NCBI GenBank assembly: GCA_009103225.1
Contig: RHPI01000575.1
Span: 91,317-155,316 of the forward strand
DNA: 64,000 nt
Reading direction: 5' to 3'
DNA from: Chlorokybus atmophyticus
Lineage: Eukaryota > Plantae > Mesostigma and Chlorokybus algae
Positions 4,591 to 54,199 of the stretch are shown here, one piece after another (the stretch's first letter is position 1; each line of letters starts with the position of its first letter). The notes under the pieces were generated by a model. That model saw nothing but the letters and a program-made list of their open reading frames with translations. It was not told the DNA's origin and ran no database searches. Both the position numbers and the translations under genes were made by a program.

Positions 4591-4702
4591 TTATGTGCAC
4601 AAAGGCAGGGTGCATCCGTCCACACGATTGTTCTGGCGTTGGAATGTTTTGAAGACGGTGCGTGCTGCATAGTACCGCAGTGGTAAGTACACATGAAGGA
4701 GA

Positions 4703-4791
<89 letters not shown>

Positions 4792-4792
4792 N

Positions 4793-4880
<88 letters not shown>

Positions 4881-5665: not shown

Positions 5666-5749
<84 letters not shown>

Positions 5750-5750
5750 N

Positions 5751-5812
<62 letters not shown>

Positions 5813-8416: not shown

Positions 8417-8418
<2 letters not shown>

Positions 8419-8476
<58 letters not shown>
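8419..8476. repeat. (CT)n microsatellite, intergenic
   Basis: Pure CT run. Confidence 0.95.
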
Positions 8477-10145: not shown

Positions 10146-13100
10146 ATGCCACGTCCATGTCGATCACCTCACCATCAAGCTCTTCCCTTCACGTGGCTGC
10201 TACTTCTTCTTCTATTATCACCACTCCTCTTCACCTCAGCAACAGCAACAACAACAACACTCCAGGCTGGATCCCCTGTTAACACCAACCTTGGATCAAA
10301 TGATACAGCCGCCTGGGCTTGGGACACCCCACAGCCAGGCACACAGATGCGGTAAGAACATCATGTTGGTTTGTTGCCTGTTGTTGTGTCAACTATGCTG
10401 GTAAGTGTTGTCAAACTCAAGTTGTTGCTGTGTGTCAAACTGTAGTTTGGATGTGGTGTCTTTGTCGCCTTCACTCTCCTTCACTTTGATGAGTTCCTCT
10501 GCTGGCGGCAATCACACGCTTTCCTCCCTGACTCTCACTCCCAACAACAACCACAACAACAACCACGATATCAAGTACTATGCGTGGGCGCTGGTTCATG
10601 TCACTCAGCAGCAAGAAGAGGGGAGTTATGGGTTGACTGTGGCGAGCAATGTGCAGGGAGGCAATTACAGCCTCGCCTTGACAGTGAGTGTGGTTGCGTG
10701 TGTGTGTGTTTGTATGTGTGCGCGCGCGCGGGGTATACTGAGTGCAATCCCTGTTTACCGCGCGCGCGTGTGGATGCGTATGTGTGCGTGCATGTGTGCG
10801 GTTGCATTTTGCGTGCATGCGTGTATCGTTGCACACATGTACAGTGTCAATGTTTGTTGTCACTCAGGCAACGTCTGCTTGGCCAACTGCGTTGGTACCC
10901 GGGTCTGATACCCGTGGAACTGCGATAGCGGGCCTGCGCTCGTACTACAACATCGAAGCCGGGAGCGCATCGATATCAACGGGCTTCGTGCGTTACAGTT
11001 TTACTTTTCAGGGGTACTCTCAAACGCCGGTGTCGATATCGGTCTCTCCTTCGATTTCAACAACTTATCAGGAGTCTCACCCTCTCGGTCTGGTATCAAC
11101 CACCCAGCCCGTGAGTGGGGTTGTGTACGCGAATGCACTCACGAGCCTGGACGCCTACATTGCCGGCATACTCGACTGCAGGCAAGTGCATTAACGTGTT
11201 GTTGCAACGGACACACGCCTGTGCGCCACACAAACGCACACATCCATGCGCACGCACACGCGCATGTGCACACGCGCGCACACGCACACGCACCGATACC
11301 AACTCGCTCCGTCCAGTGCGTACGCGGCGATATCAGGCGTGTCCTGCGTCGCCACGCCACTATCCTACTTCCTGACTCTCTCTGCGACACAACAACAAGT
11401 GGACACACTCTCCGTCGATGCGCCGGCGTTGCATCGCACCAACACGACGCTGTTCCAGTTGAGTGGGGTTGATGTTGATGTTGGTGATGTCGTTGCCGTG
11501 CGGGTGGAGAGCGAGAGTGGCGTGAGCGTGAGAGTGTATGTTGGGGATGCGTGGACATACGACACAACAAGCGCAAAGGTGAGTGTACTCTCGCTGTTGT
11601 TAGTATCGACATGATGGCTGATATCAGTGCTTTTTCCAGGTGTATCGGGACACTTGCACTAACTGCAGCTTTGTCCTTCTCCCCGATATCGCTGGTGCTG
11701 CGGATGGCGTGTACATCGTTGTTACGGGTGTTGAGGTTGTGAAAGAGTTCTCCATATCGGTCGTGAGATTGGGCCCAGCGTGCGGCTTCCGACCAACATG
11801 CTCAGCATGTCTCAAGGTGTTGCAGAGGTTGCGCATGCACGCACGTGGCATGCACATGAACACCGCACGCGCACGTGTGTGTGCACACACGTGGGCTTGC
11901 GCATACACATGTGCATGCGCAAGCCCATGCATGACCAACCCAACATGTCACAGGATATTGGAGACGTGCGCTGCGAGTGGTGCGACGGCGTGTGCACGTC
12001 ACCATCAGACTCCACATACGCCTCCCTCTCCTGTAACGCAAATGCGGACACCTGTCCCGAGAGCGATGTCTGCACCACGTACACTTCCAGCAGCACCGGT
12101 GATATCGCCGCCGGCTGCGAGGCGTGCCTGACCCATGACAGCTGCGCGTGGTGCGGGAAGGAAGGCTATCCTGGTCTCTGCGTGAGCAGCAACATGTGGG
12201 TGGTGTCATGGTTATGTTACTGGTAGACACAGATGCGTGCACACGTTCATGCCAACACTGTGCGTGTGTCTGTGGACAGTGGCAACAAAGGCGTGTGTCC
12301 ACTGTGGGCGTTATCTAGCAACTCCAGCAGCAATATCACTGCCACATGCAACCAGCTGTCAACTCTCCCTCCAGCGATATCCCCTTCTCCTTCTCCATCC
12401 TCTCCTCCACCGATACCTCCTTCTCCCTCTGTATCACCCTCTCCTTCTCTCTCTCCACCATCCTACCCTCACGTCGATATCGGCACCCAGTGGTGGGCAA
12501 CCATCGCCGATACAAACCAGACCGCAGGGGCCGAGTGCGATATCGGCTCCATCATCCAGGGCAATGCTGCCATAGTCACGCTTGAAGTGCAGAGGGTGGG
12601 AGTGATGTCCGGGTCTCAGATGCGGATAGCGGCTGGGTTTGAGTCTGGTGGGATGAGGCAATCGCTTGGAATTGGATCTCAATATCAGATGTTCTCCATC
12701 GGGGTGCCGCCGATATCAGTCACTGCCCAGCAGCAAGGATATCGGAGTGTGTACTGGCTCGCAAGTGGGCAAGGAACAGTAAGTACACTACCTTCACAGT
12801 CGTGCTGGGCTTGAGGGTGACATCATTAACCACACACGCACACACGCACGTGCGCGTGCACACATATGCATGTACATGCACACACACTCTGCATATACAG
12901 GTGGGTGTTCTTGTTGGTGTTGTGGACAGCAACATCAAGGTGCCGGCTTACGCAAACAAGACGAGCGGTGATGGTGGTATGACTGACAAGCTCACACATG
13001 CATCTTGTGTTGGGAAAGCGTGTTGTATTGCATACTAACACATGTGTTTGGGCGTGACAGATGTTGTGATGAGTCAGAGAGGCTACGCATGCTGCGGCGC

Positions 13101-23016: not shown

Positions 23017-26000
23017 ATGACGACGACCGCAGCGCTGTGCATGTGGTCGCTGGCGCCACGCAGCTGCCACGCTGCCGCTGCCGCCTCGACCCGGACGTCT
23101 CTACGCCGGTCTCACCACAGAGTAAGTATCCAGCTGCCAGCTTTCTGCCTTAAGCCAAAAGCTACTCACAAATGTTGCCATTGCGCTGTTTCTTCCTATA
23201 GGAGTTCATGACGAGCTCATTACTTGATGATGTTGACATTACTTCTCTTCGTTACAGAAAGCTTGCAAGTTGCAACAGCATGCATGGCTGTGACTGAGAA
23301 CATTGCCATTGAAAAGACACATCAGTCCTATCAGCATTTAGAGAAGCAATCCGGCATGTTTGTTGCTGAGCGTCGTAAGCAATTCGGTATCTTTTTACAC
23401 AACCGTGACAGCTGTTGTTCCGTGACAGCATGTTATGACAGCAATATCTGCTTGTGTGTTGCATCCTAGCTATGTAGCACACAACAGATCTCTGTTGCAT
23501 CAAGGTTGCTAACTACTGTCTGTCGTCTCTTCCTGTAACAGATACCATCTCAGGCAAGGAGCACCTTCATCGGCTCCCCTCGCTCCCTTCTTTCACACAC
23601 GCGCGCAATAACCAACAGACACGGATCCAACGCACCCCGTTGGCGAGTCCTTACACGCTGCGACAGCGAGCAGGACTCCGCCGCCGCGACAGATTCGCCC
23701 GCGGCGCAAGCGGTTGCTCCGGCCTCTGCGCCTGGAAAGTTATCGAAGCTCGATGGCGAGGAGGAAAGACCGCCGCTGCCAACGGGGGAGCTGGTGTACA
23801 CGCCCGCATCGTCGTTTGAACGGGTGGGTGGATGGTGTGCATACTCACATATTTGTGTAACATATGTATGCGTGGACTTGGGTGCTGGGACACGTGCTTG
23901 TTGCACGCGTGCGCATGCGCATGCACACGTACATGTGTGGTTGGTGTGTGTGGATGTGTGCTTGTGTTTGTCAGACAGTTAGTTCACTATGGCTAGTGGA
24001 GGGGTGTATGCACATCCCTTGCACATGCACGCATGCATACGCGCGCATGTATGCGCGTGTACTCGCACGTACACTCTGCACAACGCTCACACACGCCTCC
24101 TCACCCTCTCCTCTCATCCCCTCTCAGGCCTGGACCCTCCTGCGTCTCCGTTTCTCCCTCCCCTGGCGCCGCTTCAAGTATGGTTCCATCTTATCCTTCG
24201 AGCTGGGCGGCGGTCCCATCCCGGAGAAACCCACCGGCGGCCTCCCCTTCTCCGGCGTCGGGAAGAGCCTACCGCAGATATGCCAGAACCTGGTGAAGGC
24301 AGCCAATGACCCGAGGGTGGTGGGAGTGTTTATCAAGGTTAGCCCGGTGCAGTGCGGGTGGGCCAAGGTGGAGGAGATTAGGAGACACATTGCATACTTC
24401 CGGAAGTCAGGTGGGGCGTAGTGTGTGTGTCCACTTGTCCACTATACGAACACATGTGTACTACTCACACACGCGCGCATGCGCATATTGTGCACGTATA
24501 ATGCTGTATGCGTATATGCAGTACAGGTCTTGGTGGCAGACATGTTCTGATTATAGTCATTCGCGTGTGGCAGGCAAGTTCACCATTGCTTACATGGAGG
24601 TGGGAGGAGAGAAGGAGTACGTGTTGGCTCGCGCGTGCGAGGAGGTTTACGCGCCTCCCGGAGGATACGTCACCTTGCGCGGGCTGAGCGTACAAGGCTC
24701 ATACCTACGCGGTACGCCCTTCTATCCACATCTACCCAACATCTCAACATAACCCAAGTTGCTTATGTGAGTATGTTGTGTGCAGGTGTGCTCGACAAGG
24801 TTGGCGTGGAGCCGCAAGTGAAGAGGATAGGCAAGTACAAGTCCGCGGGTGATCAGATCGCGCGGCGCGACATGTCGGAGCCCAACCGCGAGATGCTCAC
24901 GGCCATACTCGATGACTTGTACACGTACTTCAAGAACACAACGGCCGCAGACAACGGTAGGTACTGTGTGTTTTGCTGTATGTCTGTCATGTGTGACGAT
25001 TGTCTCTTGGCAGGGAAGACTGCGGAGGATGTTGAGAAGTTGCTTGATGAGGGCGTGTTCCAAGTGGAGAAGCTGGCGGAGCAGGGATGGATCACGGGCA
25101 CGCGCTATGAAGATGAAGTCATTGAGGACTTGAAGAAGCGCACGGGCGGGAAAGAGGATGAACTGAGGTATAGCTGGCGTGTGCACTTGTGTGTGTGTGT
25201 GCATGCGCCTGTGTGCGTGTGTGGGCACACGTGCGGGTGCCTGTGCACGTGTGTTCACCTCTGTATGCATTCGTGTGTTCGTGCGCTTATGCATGTGTAT
25301 ATGTGCGCGCATGAGCTTGTGCATAATCAAGTGCATGTGGGTTTTGCGTGTGTGCGCGCGCAAGCGTGTGTGTGTGTGTTTATGTGTCAACAGAGAGTCT
25401 TAACTCACATGGTGCTTGCGCAGGAGTGTCGGCTTCAGTCGCTACAGCCGCGTTCCCCCCTCCGCCCTCGGCCTCTCCTCCGGCGGCGGCGACATCATCG
25501 CCATCGTCCGCGCCAGCGGCAACATCACCCGCGGCGGCACCACCTCTCCCTCCCCTCTCTCCGGCGGCTCCGACGGCATCCGCTCCGACTCGTTCATCTC
25601 ACAGATCCGCCGCATCGCCGACAACAAGAGTATCAAAGCAGTCGTGTTGAGGATCGACTCGGGTGGTGGAGACGCACTCGCGTCGGACCTCATGTGGAGG
25701 GAGCTGAGACAGCTGGCGAGCAAGAAGCCGCTGGTGTGTTCCATGGGAGATGTGGCGGCGAGTGGAGGGTATTATATGGCCATGGCGGGAGATGTCGTGA
25801 TTGCGGAGGAGCTCACTATCACGGGCTCGATTGGTGTTGTCACAGGTGAGAGAGATGGTATACCAACATGTTGGTTTGCGAGCGCAGGCATGACGTGTTG
25901 GGTGGCTGATGTGGGTGTGTTGGGTGCGACTGTCTTTTGTGTGGCATCGTCTTGTTGTGCACTGTGTGTGTGCCTGAAACACAACGCGTGACTCATATGT

Positions 26001-27069
26001 TGGGTGCTCTCCCGCCTCTCTTGCGTGCAGGCAAGTTTAGTCTGGCGGAGCTGTTTGACAGGGTTGGTTTCAACCAGACCACCATCTCGCGGGGGCGTTA
26101 CGCGGAGGTGTTGGTGTCGCAGCGGCCGTTCACGGAGGACGAGAAGGACTACTTTGACCGCAGCGCAGAGCACGCATATGAGTCGTTCAGGAATAAGGCC
26201 GCGGAGTCAAGGAGAATGCCAGTAAGTGTGTGCGGGTGCGCGTTGCACATACACTTATGATGTGCGCGCATTGTTCATATATGTGCACGTATGGTGCGCG
26301 CACGCGTTGGCATGTGTGTGCGTGTGTGTATGCGCGTGCGCGTGTGCGCGTGCGCGTGCGTATGCATGCTTGTTGTTCCACTCATGCTACAGAGAGTATG
26401 TGTCTCAGCTGTGTCGTTGTTTGGTCTCAGGTTGAGCAAATGGAGTCCGTAGCCCAGGGCCGGGTGTGGACGGGTCGGCAGGCGCTGGAGAAGGGACTCG
26501 TTGATGCGTTGGGAGGCATCTCAACTGCTGTGGCCATTGCCAAGCAGTACGCCAAACTTGAGGGAGGGGTAAGTGCAACTGTCGTCAAGCTAGTACTTGA
26601 TACCCAACCCAGACTTGACCAAATGTGTCCTACAAGCACGCATACATGTGTATGCACACCTTGTTCAAGTGTGCGCGCATATGCGCGTGTGCATGCATGT
26701 GTGCTATGCACAGGCTGTTGCAAGTTGCTGCCGTCAGAGCACACCATTTCACTTATGAACAAGTCACCCAATCACTCGCAGGTGAGGTTGGTGGAGTTCT
26801 CTCGAGGGCAGGTGTCCCCGCTCTCGCTCCTATCCGGTGGCGCCTCCGTCTTGACGGCCTTATCATCCTTAGGCTCCGCCATCCACCTCCTTAAGGAAGA
26901 GGCTGCTTCGCTCCAATCGGGCCGCGTGAGGGCTTCACTTGATGAACCCGCGTTGCGAAGCCTCACGGGCGAGGACTCGATGTCAACAGCGGTGGCGATG
27001 GTTGCTGAAGCGGGGAGTGCGCTGGCGCAGTTGCTACCGCTTCCAGCCTCGCGCGAAGATGACTTGTAG
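23017..27069 (+). CDS. SPPA: Spliced plastid signal peptide peptidase SppA (protease IV, S49) with transit peptide
   Basis: Exon 1 MTTTAALC... (23017-23121) and exon 2 (from 23542) are in phase. LRFSLPWRRFKYGSIL; SLPQICQNLVKAANDPRV; GWAKVEEIRRH; RIGKYKSAGD; RIDSGGGDALASDLMWRE; SMGDVAASGGYY; TITGSIGVV; AQGRVWTGRQA..GLVDALGG. Confidence 0.95.
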
Positions 27070-31883: not shown

Positions 31884-32796
31884 NTTGCTAGGAGTTACGC
31901 TGGATAGCGTAACTCACAGCAAGTTAGCAGCCTGGTCATCATAAGGAGAGGTTTGCCGCGCCATCTAGCTGCCTGCCGCGGCGGCGGCGGCGAGCTATCG
32001 ATAGGCGGGCTACGGCTCGGCGGCCGTTGGCTGCGTGCAATGTGGTAAATAGGCCTATAAACATGTGCATAATGCAATAAATTCATCAATAAACCCCCTC
32101 TAGGAGGAGGGGGAGGCTAATTAAAAAGATAGGGNGGGGGGGGGGCTTGTACATGCGCTTAAAGCCCCCCACCCTTCTTTGTTGAGGGGGGCTGTATTAG
32201 GGGGGGCTGTAAAAGAGTAAATATGGTAGTCAGTGTGTTGCGTTGATGCGTTACAATGATTGTCCGTCACTATGTGGAGGGAACGACACCTCCGTATATT
32301 GAAAAAAGCCTCCATACATTCGGTCACTACATTGAGGGTGGACTGTACAATGATTCTTGGATGGTAGTACCACCGTTGTACTATACCAACGTACCACGGC
32401 ACTTGCTTGCTGTCAATGTCTGGACCTCAAAGTGGATGATGCTGCGGAATTTGCCATGTGATTGAAAAGGAAGTACCACGCACGCTTTCACACCGGTCCT
32501 TACTTAGCCAGTCGTGTCAATGTGGCCACCGCAGTGTGCGGGTGTATGAAGAGCGAGCAAAGGCTTGACCGCTGTTGACAGTGGCGGTTGCAGTGAGTCT
32601 TTGTCGTTGGTTGTGCGCCTTTGCGGTGGGAAGTCCTCTGCTTGTCCTCTCCCTCTCTCTTCCTCTCTCCCTCTCTCTCCCTCTCTCTCCCTCTCTCTCT
32701 CTCTCTCTCACACGTTGCATACTGTCCTGCTGACGCTGCAACCACCATGTCTAAAGTGCGAAGTGCCCTCTCCAGCTCAGCCTCGTCCTTGACGCC

Positions 32797-33474
32797 ATGG
32801 CCTCGCTCGTGCGCCCCTGCATTGCTGCCAAGGCCCGTCTACCTGTCTGCCTGCTCCTCCTCCTGCCAATCCTGTGCTGCGTCTTCTTGCCTGCTGGAGC
32901 CGACGCTGCTGCAGGTAAGCCAAGTGTTAGCGGTGACTATGCACTGCTTGATGTGCGTGTGTGCTCTGTCCATTGCCTGCCTGTTGCAGCGACTCGCTAG
33001 GTTGTGGGTGAAGTCGGTGTTGTGTCAACAAAGTGCATTGTGCGCTTTGTGTGATAAGCAGGCAGGCTCCCCCATGCAAGCGTTCAGCGGCGCCAACTAG
33101 CCACCGCTTACTGCAATGGCCGTGCATACGACACCAGCTTCTACATCTGCTGCAACGGTGTAGTCAGCTCCAAGGGCAGCAACGCCTGCAGCAACACAAG
33201 TCCCTACAACACCAACTTCTACATCTGCTGCAACAACGTCCTCAGCTCCAAGGGCAGCAACAACGCCTGCTGCAACACCAAGCCCTACAACACCGACTTC
33301 TACATCTGCTGCAACAACTTCCTCAGCTCCAAGGGCAGCAACAACGCCTATTGCAACACCACCCCTTACAACACAAGCTTCTACATCTGCTGCAACAACG
33401 TCCTCAGCTCCAAGTTAAGGCGCCCAAGATTGAGTGTACAATACGATGAAACTATTATCTCAACTTGCTTTTGA
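32797..33474 (+). CDS. Small secreted cysteine-rich protein with four galaxin-like di-Cys repeats
   Basis: Exon 1 (32797-32914) encodes a signal peptide, MASLVRPCIAAKARLPVCLLLLLPILCCVFLPAGADAAA. A phase-1 intron (GTAAGC...AAGCAG) joins exon 2 at 33062: ...AYCNGRAYDTSFYICCNGVVSSKGSN ACSNTSPYNTNFYICCNNVLSSKGSNN ACCNTKPYNTDFYICCNNFLSSKGSNN AYCNTTPYNTSFYICCNNVLSSK...TCF* (TGA at 33472). The 3' end could be spliced further. Confidence 0.75.
33106..33414 (+). repeat. Coding tandem repeat, 78-81 bp unit x ~3.8
   Basis: Units start at 33106, 33184, 33265 and 33346; core ttctacatctgctgcaac...cagctccaag is conserved. Confidence 0.95.
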
Positions 33475-35105
33475 TGGTTTGGAAAGGCATCATGTAATGA
33501 TAATAAACATGGTAATATGGTGGTATCGTTTTCACATTGCTTACAGATGACGCTGGCTCTGGGAGAGCCAAAAGCGTTTAACCATTACATAATCAACATG
33601 ATATGACATATGCGTGTTGTGATTGTTTTCCACTTACATCAATGCAAAAATTCTGCTGCAACTCAGTCAATTGCTGCTTACTTTATCAATGACCAAGGTA
33701 TTTCGAATGCGATGCATGCGCATGTACTATTACGTAAAGTGTGACATGCGCTTATCAAGCATTGCAATGCAGTAGGCATAAGGTTGGCATAAGCGGCATG
33801 CACTGACAGGCTGTGCCGTGTATTTCAATAATCATTCTTGAACAGTCCGACCATGTTTAAGTTTGTATTCATGCAAGCTCTTGTTACCATATTGCAACAT
33901 GAATTAGGCTATTTTATTGTTTTGACATTGTATGTCATGGTTCAACCGCAACATACAATGGCATAATAGTCTACAAGGTTTGTAGACTAATATCCAATTG
34001 GTGCTCATGCAATGCTGTCATTAGCATTATCAATGCAATTGCACGTCATTAGCTGTACTGAATAAGAAGTGCCATGCATTGCACGGCACTTGCTTGGCGT
34101 ACAATGTGATGATATTGATATTCAACACATGTTGTCATGACGCTACTCAATAGTGACTACATGTCACGCCCAAAGGGCTGGCAAAAGTCACTCTCGGTTC
34201 CTTACTTATGTAGTAAGTAACAGGGACTAAGTGAGGATTCCGCATGTCAAGCTGTGTAGTGCTTGGCAGGTGTACTCATGCAGTCGTCCATGTCTCTAGG
34301 AGTCTAATAGGTTTGGGAACAGCTTAAGGTAGCTCAACTTCAATTTTAGGCAGCGTGCATGCACGCGGTTCGCCTCTGGCTAATGGTGGAGTTCGGGAGT
34401 CTTGGGTATGACGCCGCCGCTTCCACCCTAGTCCGCTCACTTGTAACTTACTGCCGACCGTCTCGTTGGGGTTTGCTTAAAGGAACTGTCGATGTCGGCC
34501 GCGGCCATAAGCCTTGCTTCCGATTGGTCGATGCTAGCAACTGCATTGATGGGTCTCATCACGATGATCACGCTGTCAGCCAACATTGGATCAGCTTCCA
34601 GTGATCCTGATGAACAGGTTGGAGTGCGCAAAGAGTGCGTTGAAAAGGTGCGTGTCGAGGGTCATCACCGAGAAATGTAGCGCTATGATATATATATACA
34701 AATGTTTATACCAAGACTCCATTATGTCATTCTTGTATATAGTGCTATTATATATTTCAATTTTATGTAAGCAAAACCTAGCATACTCAAGTTTAATTTG
34801 TATATATACATGCATATACATGTGCATGTACTTATGCACATTATATATGATAAATGTGTGCATCGTGGTAAATCTATAATGCATGCATAAGATTCCTGAA
34901 TCGAGATGTCGCATGCACGATCGGCATCTTTACAAAACAACCGAGTGGCCGGATTTTTTTTTTTTTTTGAGCCCAACAAAGATTGCATGAAGCATAAGGA
35001 CAAGAGTTCAGAGTGATACAACTACGTGCTAAAGGAAACTAGAGAATTACACTAACCATAGCGAACCAAAGACTGAGCATGGAAACGGAAGATGTCCCTA
35101 GTCTA

Positions 35106-42418: not shown

Positions 42419-45400
42419 GTTGACCAGGGTTGACCAACCCAAAGATAGATTTGCTACAAAGGGCGGCGGGGTGGCCAGGTCAGGGGCAGGACCCCATCCC
42501 CAACCACCCCCCCAACGACGTGAAAGCTCCCCCCCCCTCCCAAGCTACTCCGCCGCCGCCGCCGATCACTAGGCTCCCGTTGTTCGTCCGCCAGCGGCCG
42601 GATGTTGGTACTTGCAGCTGCGCCAATCAGAGAGTTGCATCGCTTCTGCCGTGGTAAACGGGGCCGTTAACCGTCAACCACCGCTGGCTTGCGGTGCGCA
42701 TCACCCTTGGTTTTGCACAAAAGTCCGTACTCACGCGCATTTTGCGCAAAAAAATACAGGTTTCTAACGCACGCCGCCCTCATAGAACGGCCGCATAGGG
42801 CCGCTTGCCCCGATTGCCAGCGCTTCGATCAAAATTTCACGTCGGTCAAAAGGCGAGAGAACGATTAGGGCTTAGCCCTAGGGGGGGTTAGGGTTATCGC
42901 CAGGTGACAGAGCCGACACCCGCGTGCCCGAGTCTTTAAAGTCTGCAGACTCTGCAGAGCCTGCGCCTAAGCCTTCAGGGCTACGGATTAGGCCTAGCCA
43001 CACGCGCGCTGTCTCGTGGTGCTTGCAAGCGGCGTGAATGCTGCGGCGGATGCAGAGGATTTGTCGAGTAGAGTAGTAGCACACAAGCCACACCTCTGCA
43101 TGGGGCGGCTCCGACGTCGCGGCGGCGGCGGCGGCGGCGCTGTGCACGTCTTGGTGGCCGTGTTTGCTTTGACCTAACCAGGATTTCCAAAGAGCTCGCC
43201 AGGTTCCCAACGCGGTGAGGGCCCGTTGGCCGGCACACAGCACCCACTGGCAACTTGCCAGCAACTACTGTCCCAGCATTCGTCAGTTTGGCAAGAGACT
43301 CAGGCGAGCACTGCATGCAATGCTCGCCTGAGTCTCCTCTTGGGCAAAAGGCTGCGTTGGCCTCTCTTGTTAATCAGCAGTTGCGTGTTGTCCCCAACTA
43401 GAACGCCGCGTCTCACGCGGTTCCTGCTGCATGCCGCTGCCTGAGGTGCAGGCTGCCCAACATCACACAACCAGATGCATGTGAACTTCGTCACGCACAC
43501 TCTGAGGAGGAGCGTCATTGAGCGCACGGTCGTGGCTGCAGAGTACTCACACATGGACAGGCCTGTGTATCCATGTTGGCATGTGCCGTGCACATGCATT
43601 GCCCCCTCATGTTGGTTGACCGGGTGTCGCGTGCACACCGCAGGACTGCTAGTGACGCAAACCAGCCACTTGCGTGAGAAACGCATCAACGACAAGTTGA
43701 TCGCTTGACAAGAGCGCCAGCTCACCCACCCGCTCCAGATCTAACCATGCTTCGTGCTGCTCGTCCTCATCCCCTCTTGCTCCGCCTCCTCCTTGTTCTG
43801 GTCGTTGTCCACCTCGCCGGTGCCTCTACTGCAAGCGGGGAGCGCGCACCGAGGAGGGCGCTGCTGCTGGCTGGAGGGAGTGGCGGTCATAATGATGAGG
43901 TGTTGAGCAGGACCGCGGGTGGCGTGCCGTGCTACGAAGGCCGCCCGCTGCCCAACCTCTTCCTCATTGGTGGGCAGAAGTGTGGCTCCACCACTCTCTG
44001 GGGCTATTTTGTCAGATGTGTGCTTGAAACGCGCAACGCTGACAGCGCGGCCTGACATTGACACACTTCATGTGCTTCTGCAGTGAAGCCTTTGGCAAGG
44101 GAGCGGTAAGCCCTTTGGCGTGTTTGAGATGCTTCAAGATGTGTACTAACTGAGGCCACGCACAACACACGCACGCACAGCATTGGTGTGTGTGTGTGTG
44201 TGTGTGTGTGTGCTTCAAATCAATCAAGCAGGTTTTCAAGTACGAAAAAGAGCTTCGCTTTTTACAACAACGGCTGTTGCCGCAAAGAACACCGGATTTT
44301 TTGGCAGAGTACTCAAAGATCTACCCCCGGTGCTCTGACAGCCGCCTCGCAGATGGGGTAAGAGCTGATATTGTCAACAAGGATGCTCTAATGCACTTGT
44401 CGTTTCAACATCAGCATGCAAAAGCCCAACCGTGACGTGCACACCCTTGTGTATGCACTCGCTTGTGGCCCGTGCATGCCGCACTACATATACATACATA
44501 TAGACCGCGCACGCAAGCAACTACATAGATTAGCACAGGCATATGCCCGTGCTCACATGCACACACACATGCACTAACATACACGCATATGCAGAGGGTG
44601 CGTTACGTGACGGACAGCACACCGATTTATCTGCTCTTGCTAAACACACCGATGCACATTGGCCAGCACTACTCCCGTTACGGGCTCGACGCAGAACTCA
44701 AGTTTATGGTCAGTCCTGACCTGTGTGACTTGTGTGACCTGTTTATATTTACGGTTTATGGTTTAGGTCTCCCTGCGCGACCCCGTCGAACGCACCCTCT
44801 CATGGTTTGGGCACACTGGCCGAATTACATATCACATCCCGTGCCACGTTGAATTTGATCCATGGGCCCAACAGGCCCTGGCCGAGGCCCGCACCTGCAT
44901 GGCCGCACGCCAACATCTGCCCAAGCCACGGGTGCTTCAGCTCGTGCATCGATTTGTACGACATGCACTGCCTGCATTGAAAGAGATTTTGATCAGCGGT
45001 TGTGTGCAGGTTTATGAGGAGTGTCGGCCTTCTATTCTGTTGGACTCATGGTATGCCGTTCAGTTGAACTTGTGGTGGAGGCTCTTCCCACCTCAGAGGC
45101 AATTTCTCATCGTGGACTTCCACAAGTTAGTGTACCAGCGCGAGGCCACTATCGTGCGCATGCTCGACTTCCTCGGGATCGAGTACGAGCTCCCGCTCCC
45201 GGACCTAGAAGTGCACAACAACCCCATGTCCAGTCACGATGTCTGCGCCATGCCAACCATGTCGAACGAGACGCGTGCAATGTTGGTGGAGTTCTTTCAA
45301 CCGCTCAATGAGCAGTTGAAGTCGTTGTTCGAGCGGTATGGTGTATCTAAATGGTTGCCAGAGTTTGTGTAACCGAGAGTATGTGGGTGAGGCGGGACGG

Positions 45401-47043
45401 CAAGATGAGCAACTCAAACGGGAGAGGATGCGGGAAGACGGTAAACACTTGGACAGCAATGAGGAGGATTTGGAGCTTGTGGAGCAGGGTTTAAAGCTTG
45501 AGGAGGATGCTAATGATACCGATATGTATGAGTATGACGACGCCCCATAGATAGCAAGGATTTGTGAAACTTGACCGGTTGTGTAGTATTGTTGTTTGCA
45601 TAAGCACTGAAGTAGCATCTAAAATATGTGCATATGTGTTTTGTAAGTTTTTTATGTCTCTGTGCGCACAATCAAGTATAGGTCTACGCGGTGTAAGAAC
45701 CAATGAGTGTAGAGACAGCAGCAGCGTTGGTTATAATGTCCAATATTGTGTCATAATAATGTTGTTGCTAAAATTGCGTACAGTAATCATGATGTACCAA
45801 GTCACTATGCGGTTCAATTTATTAGCTAACCTGGGCCCGGAACGAGGACGCCAAAGGGAGGTTAACTTTTGCAGTTGGAGAGCTGGCGTGCTAATGAGGC
45901 GTGCTACGCAGTGTCTGCCGCAGGAGGGGCAAATGCAAGAGCAAGGGCGAAGGCCGTGACAGCGTCATTGCATCGCCATAGTCCTTCGAGGACTCCTTGT
46001 CTCTTAGCACCGAGGCCACGAAGGGGGTGGTGGTGATTATGGTGCCAGCAGTGCTGCTACCAGTGTCAGTCTTTCAAGCAGCGGTGGTTGTGCGTGTACG
46101 CAAGACCACTCCTGGAGCAAGAGGCAGCGCAGATGGTGCTCCCAACCCTTCGGCAGCGAACCTGACATGACTCTGGCAGAGCCGAAATGGACGCAGTCGC
46201 TTGTCTTCAAGAAGATTGTGGGCAATGGCGACCTCGTGCCACACAGCTGCGGTGACGTCATCTAGGTAGTCCGCGGCAAGGACAAACTTTTGGTGTCATT
46301 CCATTGGTTTTTGGCTCGATGCTTCACGGTCAAGATGATGGAGTTAAAGCAGTGTATCAAGTTCCGCAAAGAGATAGCTCCTGCAGCGCCGATGAAGACC
46401 AACCTTCTGTTGCTGTTGCGATTGCCAATCGCAACTGCCCCTTCAGACGGCCTAAAGGGCAGCCGTATCTTCTTCGCTATTGGAGCTGACAACGCGGTTG
46501 AAAGGAAGCCAATAACTTACAGCAGTGGGTGCGTCACCAATTTGAGTGTACATGAAGTTAGTGCAGAGGTTGTTTTGATTAATGCAGTATTCATGTTAAA
46601 TCAATCGTGATTAAACTTCATACGCATTTTATATGAAGGTCACAATAGCACATAATAGTTTTTATTGATGCAGTATCAAATCCATACACTTCACATGGAT
46701 TCAACGTAATATCACTTCATGTTGATTCATGTGGAAACGATAGCAATGTGCGCTCATGTCCGTGGCATGCATATAACATATAACCGTTATATAACTTGAA
46801 GTCTTTTCATGCAATGCACACATAGTAAATACTTGATATAGGCAGCATGATCAGCAACAAGTAGCAATGCAAGGTGCATGCATGTTACCATCACGTACAC
46901 CTTGCTGCTATCACATACAACATATCGCTACTCGCTGAACTGTACAACCTCTAGGGACATAAGCTAACTAAATATCAGCCATATTATCACACATGCCGCC
47001 AACGCCTTCATTAGCGCCCTCGTGCGCCACCGCCCGCCATTAA
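41684..47043. repeat. 5.36-kb segmental duplication, copy 1
   Basis: Matches 47690-53049 at offset 6006. Confidence 0.95.
43747..45372 (+). CDS. Spliced PAPS-dependent sulfotransferase, heparan-sulfate sulfotransferase (HS3ST/NDST)-like, with N-terminal signal/anchor
   Basis: Hydrophobic N-terminus LLLRLLLVLVVVHLAGA; 5'-PSB loop LPNLFLIGGQKCGSTTLW; KELRF; VTDSTPIY; 3'-PB VSLRDPVERTLSW; SWYAVQLNLWWRLFP..QFLIV; FFQPLNEQLKSL. Confidence 0.88.

Positions 47044-47602: not shown

Positions 47603-47646
<44 letters not shown>
47603..47646. repeat. (CT)n microsatellite directly after the paralogue exon
   Basis: Pure CT run, then a G-rich tract joining to the L1 fragment. Confidence 0.9.
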
Positions 47647-47653
<7 letters not shown>

Positions 47654-48598: not shown

Positions 48599-49752
48599 AG
48601 CGGCCGGATGTTGGTACTTGCAGCTGCGCCAATCAGAGAGTTGCATCGCTTCTGCCGTGGTAAACGGGGCCGTTAACCGTCAACCACCGCTGGCTTGCGG
48701 TGCGCATCACCCTTGGTTTTGCACAAAAGTCCGTACTCACGCGCATTTTGCGCAAAAAAATACAGGTTTCTAACGCACGCCGCCCTCATAGAACGGCCGC
48801 ATAGGGCCGCTTGCCCCGATTGCCAGCGCTTCGATCAAAATTTCACGTCGGTCAAAAGGCGAGAGAACGATTAGGGCTTAGCCCTAGGGGGGGTTAGGGT
48901 TATCGCCAGGTGACAGAGCCGACACCCGCGTGCCCGAGTCTTTAAAGTCTGCAGACTCTGCAGAGCCTGCGCCTAAGCCTTCAGGGCTACGGATTAGGCC
49001 TAGCCACACGCGCGCTGTCTCGTGGTGCTTGCAAGCGGCGTGAATGCTGCGGCGGATGCAGAGGATTTGTCGAGTAGAGTAGTAGCACACAAGCCACACC
49101 TCTGCATGGGGCGGCTCCGACGTCGCGGCGGCGGCGGCGGCGGCGCTGTGCACGTCTTGGTGGCCGTGTTTGCTTTGACCTAACCAGGATTTCCAAAGAG
49201 CTCGCCAGGTTCCCAACGCGGTGAGGGCCCGTTGGCCGGCACACAGCACCCACTGGCAACTTGCCAGCAACTACTGTCCCAGCATTCGTCAGTTTGGCAA
49301 GAGACTCAGGCGAGCACTGCATGCAATGCTCGCCTGAGTCTCCTCTTGGGCAAAAGGCTGCGTTGGCCTCTCTTGTTAATCAGCAGTTGCGTGTTGTCCC
49401 CAACTAGAACGCCGCGTCTCACGCGGTTCCTGCTGCATGCCGCTGCCTGAGGTGCAGGCTGCCCAACATCACACAACCAGATGCATGTGAACTTCGTCAC
49501 GCACACTCTGAGGAGGAGCGTCATTGAGCGCACGGTCGTGGCTGCAGAGTACTCACACATGGACAGGCCTGTGTATCCATGTTGGCATGTGCCGTGCACA
49601 TGCATTGCCCCCTCATGTTGGTTGACCGGGTGTCGCGTGCACACCGCAGGACTGCTAGTGACGCAAACCAGCCACTTGCGTGAGAAACGCATCAACGACA
49701 AGTTGATCGCTTGACAAGAGCGCCAGCTCACCCACCCGCTCCAGATCTAACC

Positions 49753-51378: not shown

Positions 51379-54199
51379 CCGAGAGTATGTGGGTGAGGCG
51401 GGACGGCAAGATGAGCAACTCAAACGGGAGAGGATGCGGGAAGACGGTAAACACTTGGACAGCAATGAGGAGGATTTGGAGCTTGTGGAGCAGGGTTTAA
51501 AGCTTGAGGAGGATGCTAATGATACCGATATGTATGAGTATGACGACGCCCCATAGATAGCAAGGATTTGTGAAACTTGACCGGTTGTGTAGTATTGTTG
51601 TTTGCATAAGCACTGAAGTAGCATCTAAAATATGTGCATATGTGTTTTGTAAGTTTTTTATGTCTCTGTGCGCACAATCAAGTATAGGTCTACGCGGTGT
51701 AAGAACCAATGAGTGTAGAGACAGCAGCAGCGTTGGTTATAATGTCCAATATTGTGTCATAATAATGTTGTTGCTAAAATTGCGTACAGTAATCATGATG
51801 TACCAAGTCACTATGCGGTTCAATTTATTAGCTAACCTGGGCCCGGAACGAGGACGCCAAAGGGAGGTTAACTTTTGCAGTTGGAGAGCTGGCGTGCTAA
51901 TGAGGCGTGCTACGCAGTGTCTGCCGCAGGAGGGGCAAATGCAAGAGCAAGGGCGAAGGCCGTGACAGCGTCATTGCATCGCCATAGTCCTTCGAGGACT
52001 CCTTGTCTCTTAGCACCGAGGCCACGAAGGGGGTGGTGGTGATTATGGTGCCAGCAGTGCTGCTACCAGTGTCAGTCTTTCAAGCAGCGGTGGTTGTGCG
52101 TGTACGCAAGACCACTCCTGGAGCAAGAGGCAGCGCAGATGGTGCTCCCAACCCTTCGGCAGCGAACCTGACATGACTCTGGCAGAGCCGAAATGGACGC
52201 AGTCGCTTGTCTTCAAGAAGATTGTGGGCAATGGCGACCTCGTGCCACACAGCTGCGGTGACGTCATCTAGGTAGTCCGCGGCAAGGACAAACTTTTGGT
52301 GTCATTCCATTGGTTTTTGGCTCGATGCTTCACGGTCAAGATGATGGAGTTAAAGCAGTGTATCAAGTTCCGCAAAGAGATAGCTCCTGCAGCGCCGATG
52401 AAGACCAACCTTCTGTTGCTGTTGCGATTGCCAATCGCAACTGCCCCTTCAGACGGCCTAAAGGGCAGCCGTATCTTCTTCGCTATTGGAGCTGACAACG
52501 CGGTTGAAAGGAAGCCAATAACTTACAGCAGTGGGTGCGTCACCAATTTGAGTGTACATGAAGTTAGTGCAGAGGTTGTTTTGATTAATGCAGTATTCAT
52601 GTTAAATCAATCGTGATTAAACTTCATACGCATTTTATATGAAGGTCACAATAGCACATAATAGTTTTTATTGATGCAGTATCAAATCCATACACTTCAC
52701 ATGGATTCAACGTAATATCACTTCATGTTGATTCATGTGGAAACGATAGCAATGTGCGCTCATGTCCGTGGCATGCATATAACATATAACCGTTATATAA
52801 CTTGAAGTCTTTTCATGCAATGCACACATAGTAAATACTTGATATAGGCAGCATGATCAGCAACAAGTAGCAATGCAAGGTGCATGCATGTTACCATCAC
52901 GTACACCTTGCTGCTATCACATACAACATATCGCTACTCGCTGAACTGTACAACCTCTAGGGACATAAGCTAACTAAATATCAGCCATATTATCACACAT
53001 GCCGCCAACGCCTTCATTAGCGCCCTCGTGCGCCACCGCCCGCCATTAANACGTTCGTCGCGGTGGATGTACCCTATCACGCGTCATAAATCGTGGAACG
53101 CTTGTAAACCCAAGTAGCATACCAATGAGCACTATATGTTGTTTGAAGATGGAGAATGTTGTTGGTGAATTTAATGCCTATATATTGTCTTACGCTTGTG
53201 CAATTGATCAAAGTGGGTCAATATGCCTTTTGTTTTGCTGTTATACAAATCTTGCCATCAGCAAACATAGTAGAAGTTACTTGTTTATGGTCAACCATAA
53301 CTTGTGGTTGGTTTTGATAGGAGGGAGAAATGGTAATATTTATTTGATATCAATTGTCGTCGAATATCCCCCNNNNNNNNNNNNNNNNNNNNNNNNNNNN
53401 NNNNNNNNNNNNNNNNNNNNNNNNNNNNNNNNNNNNNNNNNNNNNNNNNNNNNNNNNNNNNNNNNNNNNNNNNNNNNNNNNNNNNNNNNNNNNNNNNNNN
53501 NNNNNNNNNNNNNNNNNNNNNNNNNNNNNNNNNNNNNNNNNNNNNNNNNNCCCCCCTTAGGACTAACACCCTCCATTAAGTTTGGTGGTGGTGGTTGGTG
53601 GACACCTCCCTTGTACACTCATTTCGTCTTTTTTTACAACACCCCCCATGATTTAGCGGTGTCATGCCATGAGCACTCGTTGCCACGAGCACTTGACACA
53701 ATTAGCGTTGTACTGAGCACATCATTGAGAGATACAAGCATTCATGCGCACACGCACCAGTGGGGGCTATTTTCAACAAGTAGAGGATGCTCTGTGCATA
53801 CATATACACTCAACCGTATGTACACCTATGCAAGATGAGGGAAACTATGCCATAGCCCGTCCGTGGCGCTCTTGTGACTGAAGAGCGGACCATTTTGCCA
53901 ACACGCAGGGTAGCAACCTCGCAGACATTTTCTCTGACCACACCACGGGTCGAGCTTTCATGCGACACCGATAGAAATGGTTCCCCAACAGTCTAACTTT
54001 GACCACAACCTGATTGAAAAACTACCTCTAAATCAATTGGAAATTTGGTGGCAACCGAGGTATTGATTTCTCTCTTTTTCTGTTTTAGTCACAACTCAGT
54101 TTGGTATCTAGCGGCCATCAAGGTAAAGTAGACGGCGTGCATTCAGTTTAGTATCCGTCTTATCTTCAACTTAATAATGGTTACATCCTTCATAATTGT

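Follow-up and report, generated by a model that had tools for sequence, protein, structure and literature searches.

Here, we report a new member of the known Galaxin_repeat family in an unexpected lineage, the deep-branching streptophyte alga Chlorokybus atmophyticus. The best explanation of its locus, in the 64,000-nucleotide stretch of DNA analysed as a whole (the window), includes an unannotated two-exon nuclear algal gene for a small secreted protein, a reading to which we give about an even chance. Galaxin repeats have so far been discussed almost only as animal skeleton, shell or symbiosis proteins, and a gene in such an alga, closest to rare soil-bacterial genes, makes the known range of the family wider. 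Feature coordinates are collected in Table 1, and in every search, the query was exon 1 or exon 2 by itself.

The repeat was located with Tandem Repeats Finder (33127 to 33414, forward strand; period, 81 nt; 3.6 copies; 88% matches; score, 420), and self-BLAST recovered the same 81-nt shifts at the locus, so that the repeat noticed in an earlier inspection of the DNA (the sequence-only reading) is real and lies where it had been placed. Translated in the frame from 33064, the array gives four units, AYCNGRAYDTSFYICCNGVVSSKGSN(A), ACSNTSPYNTNFYICCNNVLSSKGSNN, ACCNTKPYNTDFYICCNNFLSSKGSNN and AYCNTTPYNTSFYICCNNVLSSK, of the general form A-x-C-N-T-x-P-Y-N-T-x-F-Y-I-C-C-N-N-V-L-S-S-K-G-S-N-N (26 to 27 aa). 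Because this frame contains no ATG, GTG or TTG, the list of open reading frames holds only an off-frame, Q/L-rich frame at the locus (33033 to 33449), just as had been described. The (A)CC form proposed for the repeat fared less evenly: the four units of 26 to 27 aa are present, but the first di-Cys is complete as ACC in unit 3 only and reads YC in unit 1, CS in unit 2 and YC in unit 4. For the first units of the galaxin-repeat family, YC is normal. Outside the Cys columns, units 2 to 4 differ at columns that are also variable across the family, and the conserved non-Cys columns are all retained in all four units.

Exon 2 matched Pfam PF24748 (Galaxin_repeat) with 66.8 bits (E value, 2.4e-18; curated gathering cutoff, 28 bits), exon-2 residues 16 to 118 aligning with profile positions 3 to 109 of 131, and the predicted profile similarity to galaxin repeats is thereby borne out. 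HMMER searches of 1.84 billion representatives returned 303 relatives at an E value of ≤1e-3, 66 of them at ≤1e-10; together with the PF24748 E value, this puts the repeat far beyond chance. The di-Cys sites fall at exon-2 residues 29, 42, 55, 69, 82, 96 and 109 with alternating spacings of 13 and 14, and this strict 14/13 spacing is common to the alga, to three relatives labelled P0001, P0002 and P0006, and to a Mercenaria protein (P0015). The algal layout is one Cys, seven di-Cys sites and one Cys, with 5, 7 or 9 sites in the bacterial relatives. A literature search found no paper naming both "galaxin" and "Chlorokybus"; a Hydra "usherin-like" entry has moderate similarity to galaxins (PMC2726143).

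Two side observations concern other members of the family. A subfamily (P0023, P0095 and P0121) has C-x-x-C in the same place at every second di-Cys site, over 32 sites, a regular ladder variant hidden by the Pfam family name. In P0043 (JGI; 154 aa) and P0015 (Mercenaria XP_053406371), the repeat is followed by poly-F and I/L-rich runs resembling translated introns or 3' read-through; start-less repeat exons of the family therefore seem to be mismodelled elsewhere too.

Table 1. Features at the galaxin-like locus (positions within the window)
Feature	Position	Strand	Basis or remark
CT-rich microsatellite in 5' flank, candidate promoter or 5'UTR	32647-32709	+	Tandem Repeats Finder
Upstream out-of-frame ATG, A at -3	32747-32749	+	50 nt before 32797
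Exon 1: GCCATGG start context, 39 codons + 1 nt, signal-peptide-like	32797-32914	+	Translation
Intron: 147 nt, GT-AG, phase 1	32915-33061	+	In-frame stops at 32998 and 33052 if retained
Exon 2: leader with dibasic RR, four galaxin-type units, tail, stop 33472-33474	33062-33474	+	Translation, PF24748, AlphaFold2
Repeat array: four 26-27 aa units, predicted as eight beta-hairpins	33106-33414	+	Third-position GC 0.89
Ser43 (AGC) at the family's second Cys of di-Cys site 3	33190-33192	+	Partner Cys55 would be left unpaired by the proposed ladder
Tyr96 (TAT) at the family's first Cys of di-Cys site 7	33349-33351	+	Partner Cys83 would be left unpaired by the proposed ladder
Nonhomologous tail, 19 codons (LRRPRLSVQYDETIISTCF)	33415-33471	+	Third-position GC 0.32, AT-rich, no match
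TGTAA and AATAAA, possible poly(A) signals	33493-33497 and 33502-33507	+	19-30 nt past stop
Probable decayed extra repeat, other frame (ACCDCFPLTSMQKFCCNSVNCC..., then stop)	33612-33692	+	Weak tblastn matches from all four queries

Exon 1 reads by eye, under von Heijne's -3/-1 rule, as a putative signal peptide, with a basic start, a 17-residue hydrophobic core (LPVCLLLLLPILCCVFL) and the residues A-D-A ahead of the probable cleavage site. The donor (CAG/GTAAGC, 32914/32915) and acceptor (AAGCAG/G, 33061/33062) make the 32914/33062 junction proposed in the sequence-only reading a consistent one, canonical GT-AG and in phase. The dibasic RR of the exon 2 leader (nt 33088 to 33093) stands in the context VQRR/QL, which is RRxL-like. 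The repeats have a third-position GC of 0.89, exon 1 has 0.69 and neighbouring Peptidase_S49 exons have 0.68 to 0.79. Downstream, the role given to TGTAA and AATAAA follows known algal and plant poly(A) signals. Upstream, the ATG at 32747, if transcribed, would open an overlapping upstream frame ending at 33098 to 33100, and being out of frame, it could suppress translation of the galaxin frame. The 5' microsatellite lies ~90 nt before the galaxin-like start codon, and CT/GA microsatellites of the same type occur in the window at 4699 to 4878, 5673 to 5811, 8418 to 8476 and 47603 to 47647.

No identical or near-identical protein was found among 5.8 billion clusters or the 1.84 billion representatives, and the gene is absent from the protein databases searched, in keeping with the earlier remark that it would be easily missed by annotation. 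As no matching database protein was returned, the gene appears to be unannotated and without an assembled transcript product. The locus shows how annotation misses a repeat exon that lacks a start codon and follows a short exon for a putative signal peptide. The window holds one copy only, tblastn having found no paralogue in it. Neither tblastn with four queries, nor a DNA pattern search, nor reading of 33400 to 35100 turned up a third exon that would supply the RCCPG...C cap, a feature of the bacterial relatives that the algal copy is missing. The element at 33612 was ruled out as such an exon, being out of frame, AT-rich and without an AG acceptor. A transposon insertion at 33415 was also rejected, since self-BLAST found the downstream DNA only once in the window.

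The fold of exon 2 was modelled with AlphaFold2 from a 60-sequence alignment (mean pLDDT, 89.6; pTM, 0.71), with pLDDT mostly >94 over residues 11 to 120 and 61 to 64 over the last 19 residues. The model contains 16 short strands forming eight beta-hairpins, one per half-unit and two per 27-aa unit, so that the ~125-aa product is predicted to be a rod of eight stacked hairpins. The way in which the hairpins may be tied together was read from Cys covariation in 161 relatives, not from coordinates or chemistry. Neighbouring di-Cys sites each with a single Cys were counted at 74 places in 35 proteins, and in 66 of these 74 pairs, the residues that remain are the first Cys of the leading site and the second Cys of the following site; the second Cys of the leading site and the first Cys of the following one have thus disappeared as a pair. 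In addition, the N-terminal unit of the family lacks the first Cys and no other, and the proteins close with a lone Cys. Co-loss, the first unit and the single terminal Cys together imply a disulfide ladder, with rungs that would run from the second Cys of site i to the first Cys of site i+1, and the co-loss analysis thus offers a concrete candidate disulfide topology for the whole family.

Solved structures related to the protein were found neither by sequence profile nor by Foldseek at an E value of ≤0.001. The best VIA-align match was zebrafish granulin 6cku (Z, 2.6; 47 residues; rmsd, 3.8), too weak for fold assignment. Granulin is a beta-hairpin stack pinned by a disulfide ladder from C, CC and C motifs, and the granulin/epithelin module would thus share the building principle suggested by our model. 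Cys spacing and unit length differ between the two, with no sequence or Pfam match, and the algal protein falls outside the granulins by each comparison made (no Pfam granulin match at an E value of ≤10, a VIA-align Z of 2.6 and no Foldseek match at ≤0.001). At ~100 to 125 aa, this is a small, tractable family member for solving a fold and a disulfide map that no solved structure covers.

Within this family, the algal copy is atypical and divergent and looks partly damaged. The family keeps both Cys at each internal di-Cys site or loses them as ladder partners, a rule from which Ser43 and Tyr96 depart. Isolated losses of a ladder Cys occur at 5 of ~2,022 family sites, and two among seven sites in one copy have a P value of ~1e-4 at that rate. 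Homology and codon bias both stop at 33414, where third-position GC falls from 0.89 to 0.32. From there, the tail supplies the final Cys (C135). The pattern CC-x3-P-x7-CCN was found in the six frames of the window only in unit 3 and, as ACC-x3-P-x7-CCN, in the element at 33612 to 33692, which has a third-position GC of 0.28, lies ~140 nt beyond the stop codon and cannot be joined through any AG acceptor; we take it to be probably a decayed further repeat.

Two readings of this state were weighed. The copy may be an expressed working variant with free thiols, on which we put about half of our weight, or a young pseudogene, descended from a working galaxin-repeat gene and no longer yielding a working protein, which we regard as possible but doubtful. 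The two uncoordinated Cys losses, the abrupt end of homology with its drop in GC, the decayed out-of-frame repeat past the stop without a usable acceptor, the out-of-frame ATG 50 nt upstream and the want of a matching database protein all speak for decay. They are set against 137 exon-2 codons free of any stop or frameshift, splice sites and a start context that are intact, conserved non-Cys columns kept in all four units, an even Cys count with the terminal Cys present, and well-placed poly(A)-like signals. With two rungs of the ladder broken (Cys55 and Cys83 unpaired) and the 3' end remodelled, the gene would be either a free-thiol variant or one starting to decay. If the protein is made, one may speculate that the Cys55 and Cys83 thiols could form intermolecular links.

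As a working variant, the gene would act as follows. Exon 1 would provide a cleavable signal peptide, the 147-nt intron being removed by splicing, and the short leader with VQRR/QL may be trimmed at RR. The ~125-aa basic product would then form the rod, each hairpin disulfide-tied to the next, and would serve outside the cell, at the surface of wall or mucilage, as a stable nonenzymatic module for binding or protection.

Coral galaxins have a signal peptide, a basic endoprotease site and tandem di-Cys repeats (PMC2726143; PMC7533068); they are acidic (pI, ~4.5) and ~290 to 300 aa long, with ~10 repeats of ~30 aa (PMC2726143). Set beside coral galaxin (Galaxea/Acropora) and animal galaxin-like proteins, the algal protein has PF24748 in common with them, and it resembles coral galaxin in its predicted signal peptide, putative basic processing site and tandem units of two di-Cys sites, with a Cys content of 10 to 12% in both. 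It differs in having ~4 units of 27 aa, a basic product, RR only in place of R-x-R-R, and two degraded di-Cys sites. With a pI of 8.4 to 8.9 (4 Asp+Glu against 9 to 12 basic residues in the exon-2 product), ~125 aa and four 27-aa units, it falls outside coral galaxin sensu stricto. The product also carries three N-x-S/T sites.

The sequence-only reading had proposed an extracellular scaffold for biomineralisation or organic scales, akin to coral skeletal galaxin. Zoospores of the algal lineage of Chlorokybus bear scales, and the repeat family is that of coral galaxin, with a putative signal peptide, a candidate dibasic site and repeats in what would be the same order. We nonetheless consider such a scaffold improbable, since the product is basic and poor in acidic residues where coral galaxin has a pI of ~4.5 (PMC2726143), and galaxin-like proteins are present in non-calcifying animals (PMC2726143) as well as in soil bacteria, while cationic squid galaxins give rise to peptides with antibacterial action (PMC12773714). 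The occurrence of the repeat in non-calcifiers, bacteria and antibacterial squid proteins means that a galaxin repeat does not imply mineral. On the same grounds (a basic product, galaxins in non-calcifiers and bacteria, and antibacterial squid peptides), we favour, by analogy, a secreted binding module of high stability, acting at the surface or facing microbes, in preference to a scaffold for mineral or scales, and because of the positive charge, a defensin-like role facing microbes seems likelier than a mineral-matrix role. Squid galaxins EsGal1 to EsGal10, which would serve as a model for such a role, are likewise cationic galaxin-repeat proteins and are secreted, as the algal one is predicted to be; the similarity is at family level only, the squid ones being animal proteins with repeats more numerous and longer than in the alga.

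The nearest relatives of the algal protein are products of small bacterial genes from soil, with 62 to 71% identity. They include a 17-member cluster drawn from metagenomes of soil and other sources (P0001; 66 to 68% identity) and a protein from a Thermoanaerobaculia soil MAG (P0002; DASYJD010000053; 62 to 71% identity); a further relative, P0006, has 61% identity. Apart from one soil-bacterial MAG, all named relatives found are animal proteins (Mercenaria, Cyprideis, Littorina, Saccoglossus, Nematostella, Ciona, Lepisosteus and Ancylostoma), with ≤53% identity to the alga (Mercenaria P0015, 53%), and the ESM Atlas returned two mollusc galaxin clusters only (scores, ≤0.82). A pattern scan of 185,579 prokaryotic species genomes gave one match, and the family is therefore rare in bacteria. 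The bacterial proteins (P0002, the P0001 cluster and soil-metagenome genes, all "hypothetical") have in common with the alga the 27-aa unit, the KGSNNACC linker, a distinct first unit (C-x-G-R-x-Y-D-x-x-F-Y-I-C-C-N-G-V), an N-terminal signal sequence (putative in the alga) and an odd number of di-Cys sites flanked by one Cys at either end. Unlike the algal gene, the bacterial genes are intronless with Shine-Dalgarno sites, and their products have the RCCPG...C cap and keep every di-Cys, where the alga does neither. DNA identity between algal and bacterial genes is 66 to 75%.

Three of the related loci were inspected. Locus L001 is bacterial, with AAGGAG 7 nt ahead of the ATG and a gene for a TonB-dependent receptor close by, and L002 is bacterial with an AAGGAG site. 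In L007, the galaxin-repeat gene follows a glycosyltransferase-2 gene and an ABC-2 permease/ATPase exporter pair and has an AAGGAGG site; its product (L007:2853-3182; 109 aa) scored 69.3 bits on PF24748, another bacterial relative scoring 55.4 bits. This gene has a GC content of 0.52 against 0.69 in its flanks and has the look of a foreign gene, a hint that bacteria may have received such genes instead of donating them.

In a tree built from 107 segments (101 columns), no decision between bacterial and animal affinity was reached, the alga falling in a polytomy with P0001, P0006, Mercenaria P0015 and P0021; the evidence for bacterial affinity left after it is the ranking by identity, together with the first-unit and linker motifs found on both sides. 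These similarities suggest a link between the alga and soil bacteria, with no direction or date of transfer claimed. A bolder and tentative reading, which we put somewhat below an even chance, is that the galaxin-type module of disulfide-laddered hairpins passed, in either direction, between soil bacteria and a land-dwelling streptophyte alga that branched early. In the alga, it would have gained a signal-peptide exon and an intron and afterwards multiplied into a small local family of genes serving at the cell surface, against microbes or with them. If this is true, the "animal" skeletal-matrix repeat would be a mobile, cross-kingdom extracellular module, and exchange of genes between a terrestrial alga and soil bacteria can be put to the test at this locus.

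That the locus is not algal at all, being bacterial contamination in the assembly or a chance frame in a noncoding minisatellite, we consider scarcely credible, even though the closest relatives are bacterial and the DNA here is tandemly repeated and, in its other frame, Q/L-rich and of low complexity. The galaxin frame is without a start codon of its own and depends on a GT-AG intron for access to one, a Shine-Dalgarno site of the kind found in the bacterial genes is missing, the codon bias fits the host (third-position GC, 0.89 against 0.68 to 0.79 in nearby Peptidase_S49 exons), and the surrounding 64 kb are of eukaryote type, with microsatellites and intron-split Peptidase_S49 exons; the algal copy is therefore not taken as contamination. 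A DNA identity to the bacterial genes of merely 66 to 75% also argues against it, and chance is excluded by the PF24748 E value.

Elsewhere in the window, two long open reading frames at 24635 to 27069 contain Peptidase_S49 (SppA-type signal peptide peptidase) parts matching profile positions 51 to 105 and 110 to 153; both are exons of one intron-split gene (third-position GC, 0.68 to 0.79). At 34493 to 34617, a possible first exon of another gene was noted by eye, with an ATG, a hydrophobic stretch (MSAAAISLASDWSMLATALMGLITMITLSANIG...) and a CAG/GT donor. Identical weak tblastn matches were obtained at 1742 to 2035 and 11389 to 11682, at 43277 to 43327 and 49283 to 49333, and at 45711 to 45812 and 51717 to 51818, and their fixed offsets of ~9.6 kb and ~6.0 kb point to large segmental or tandem duplications inside the window.
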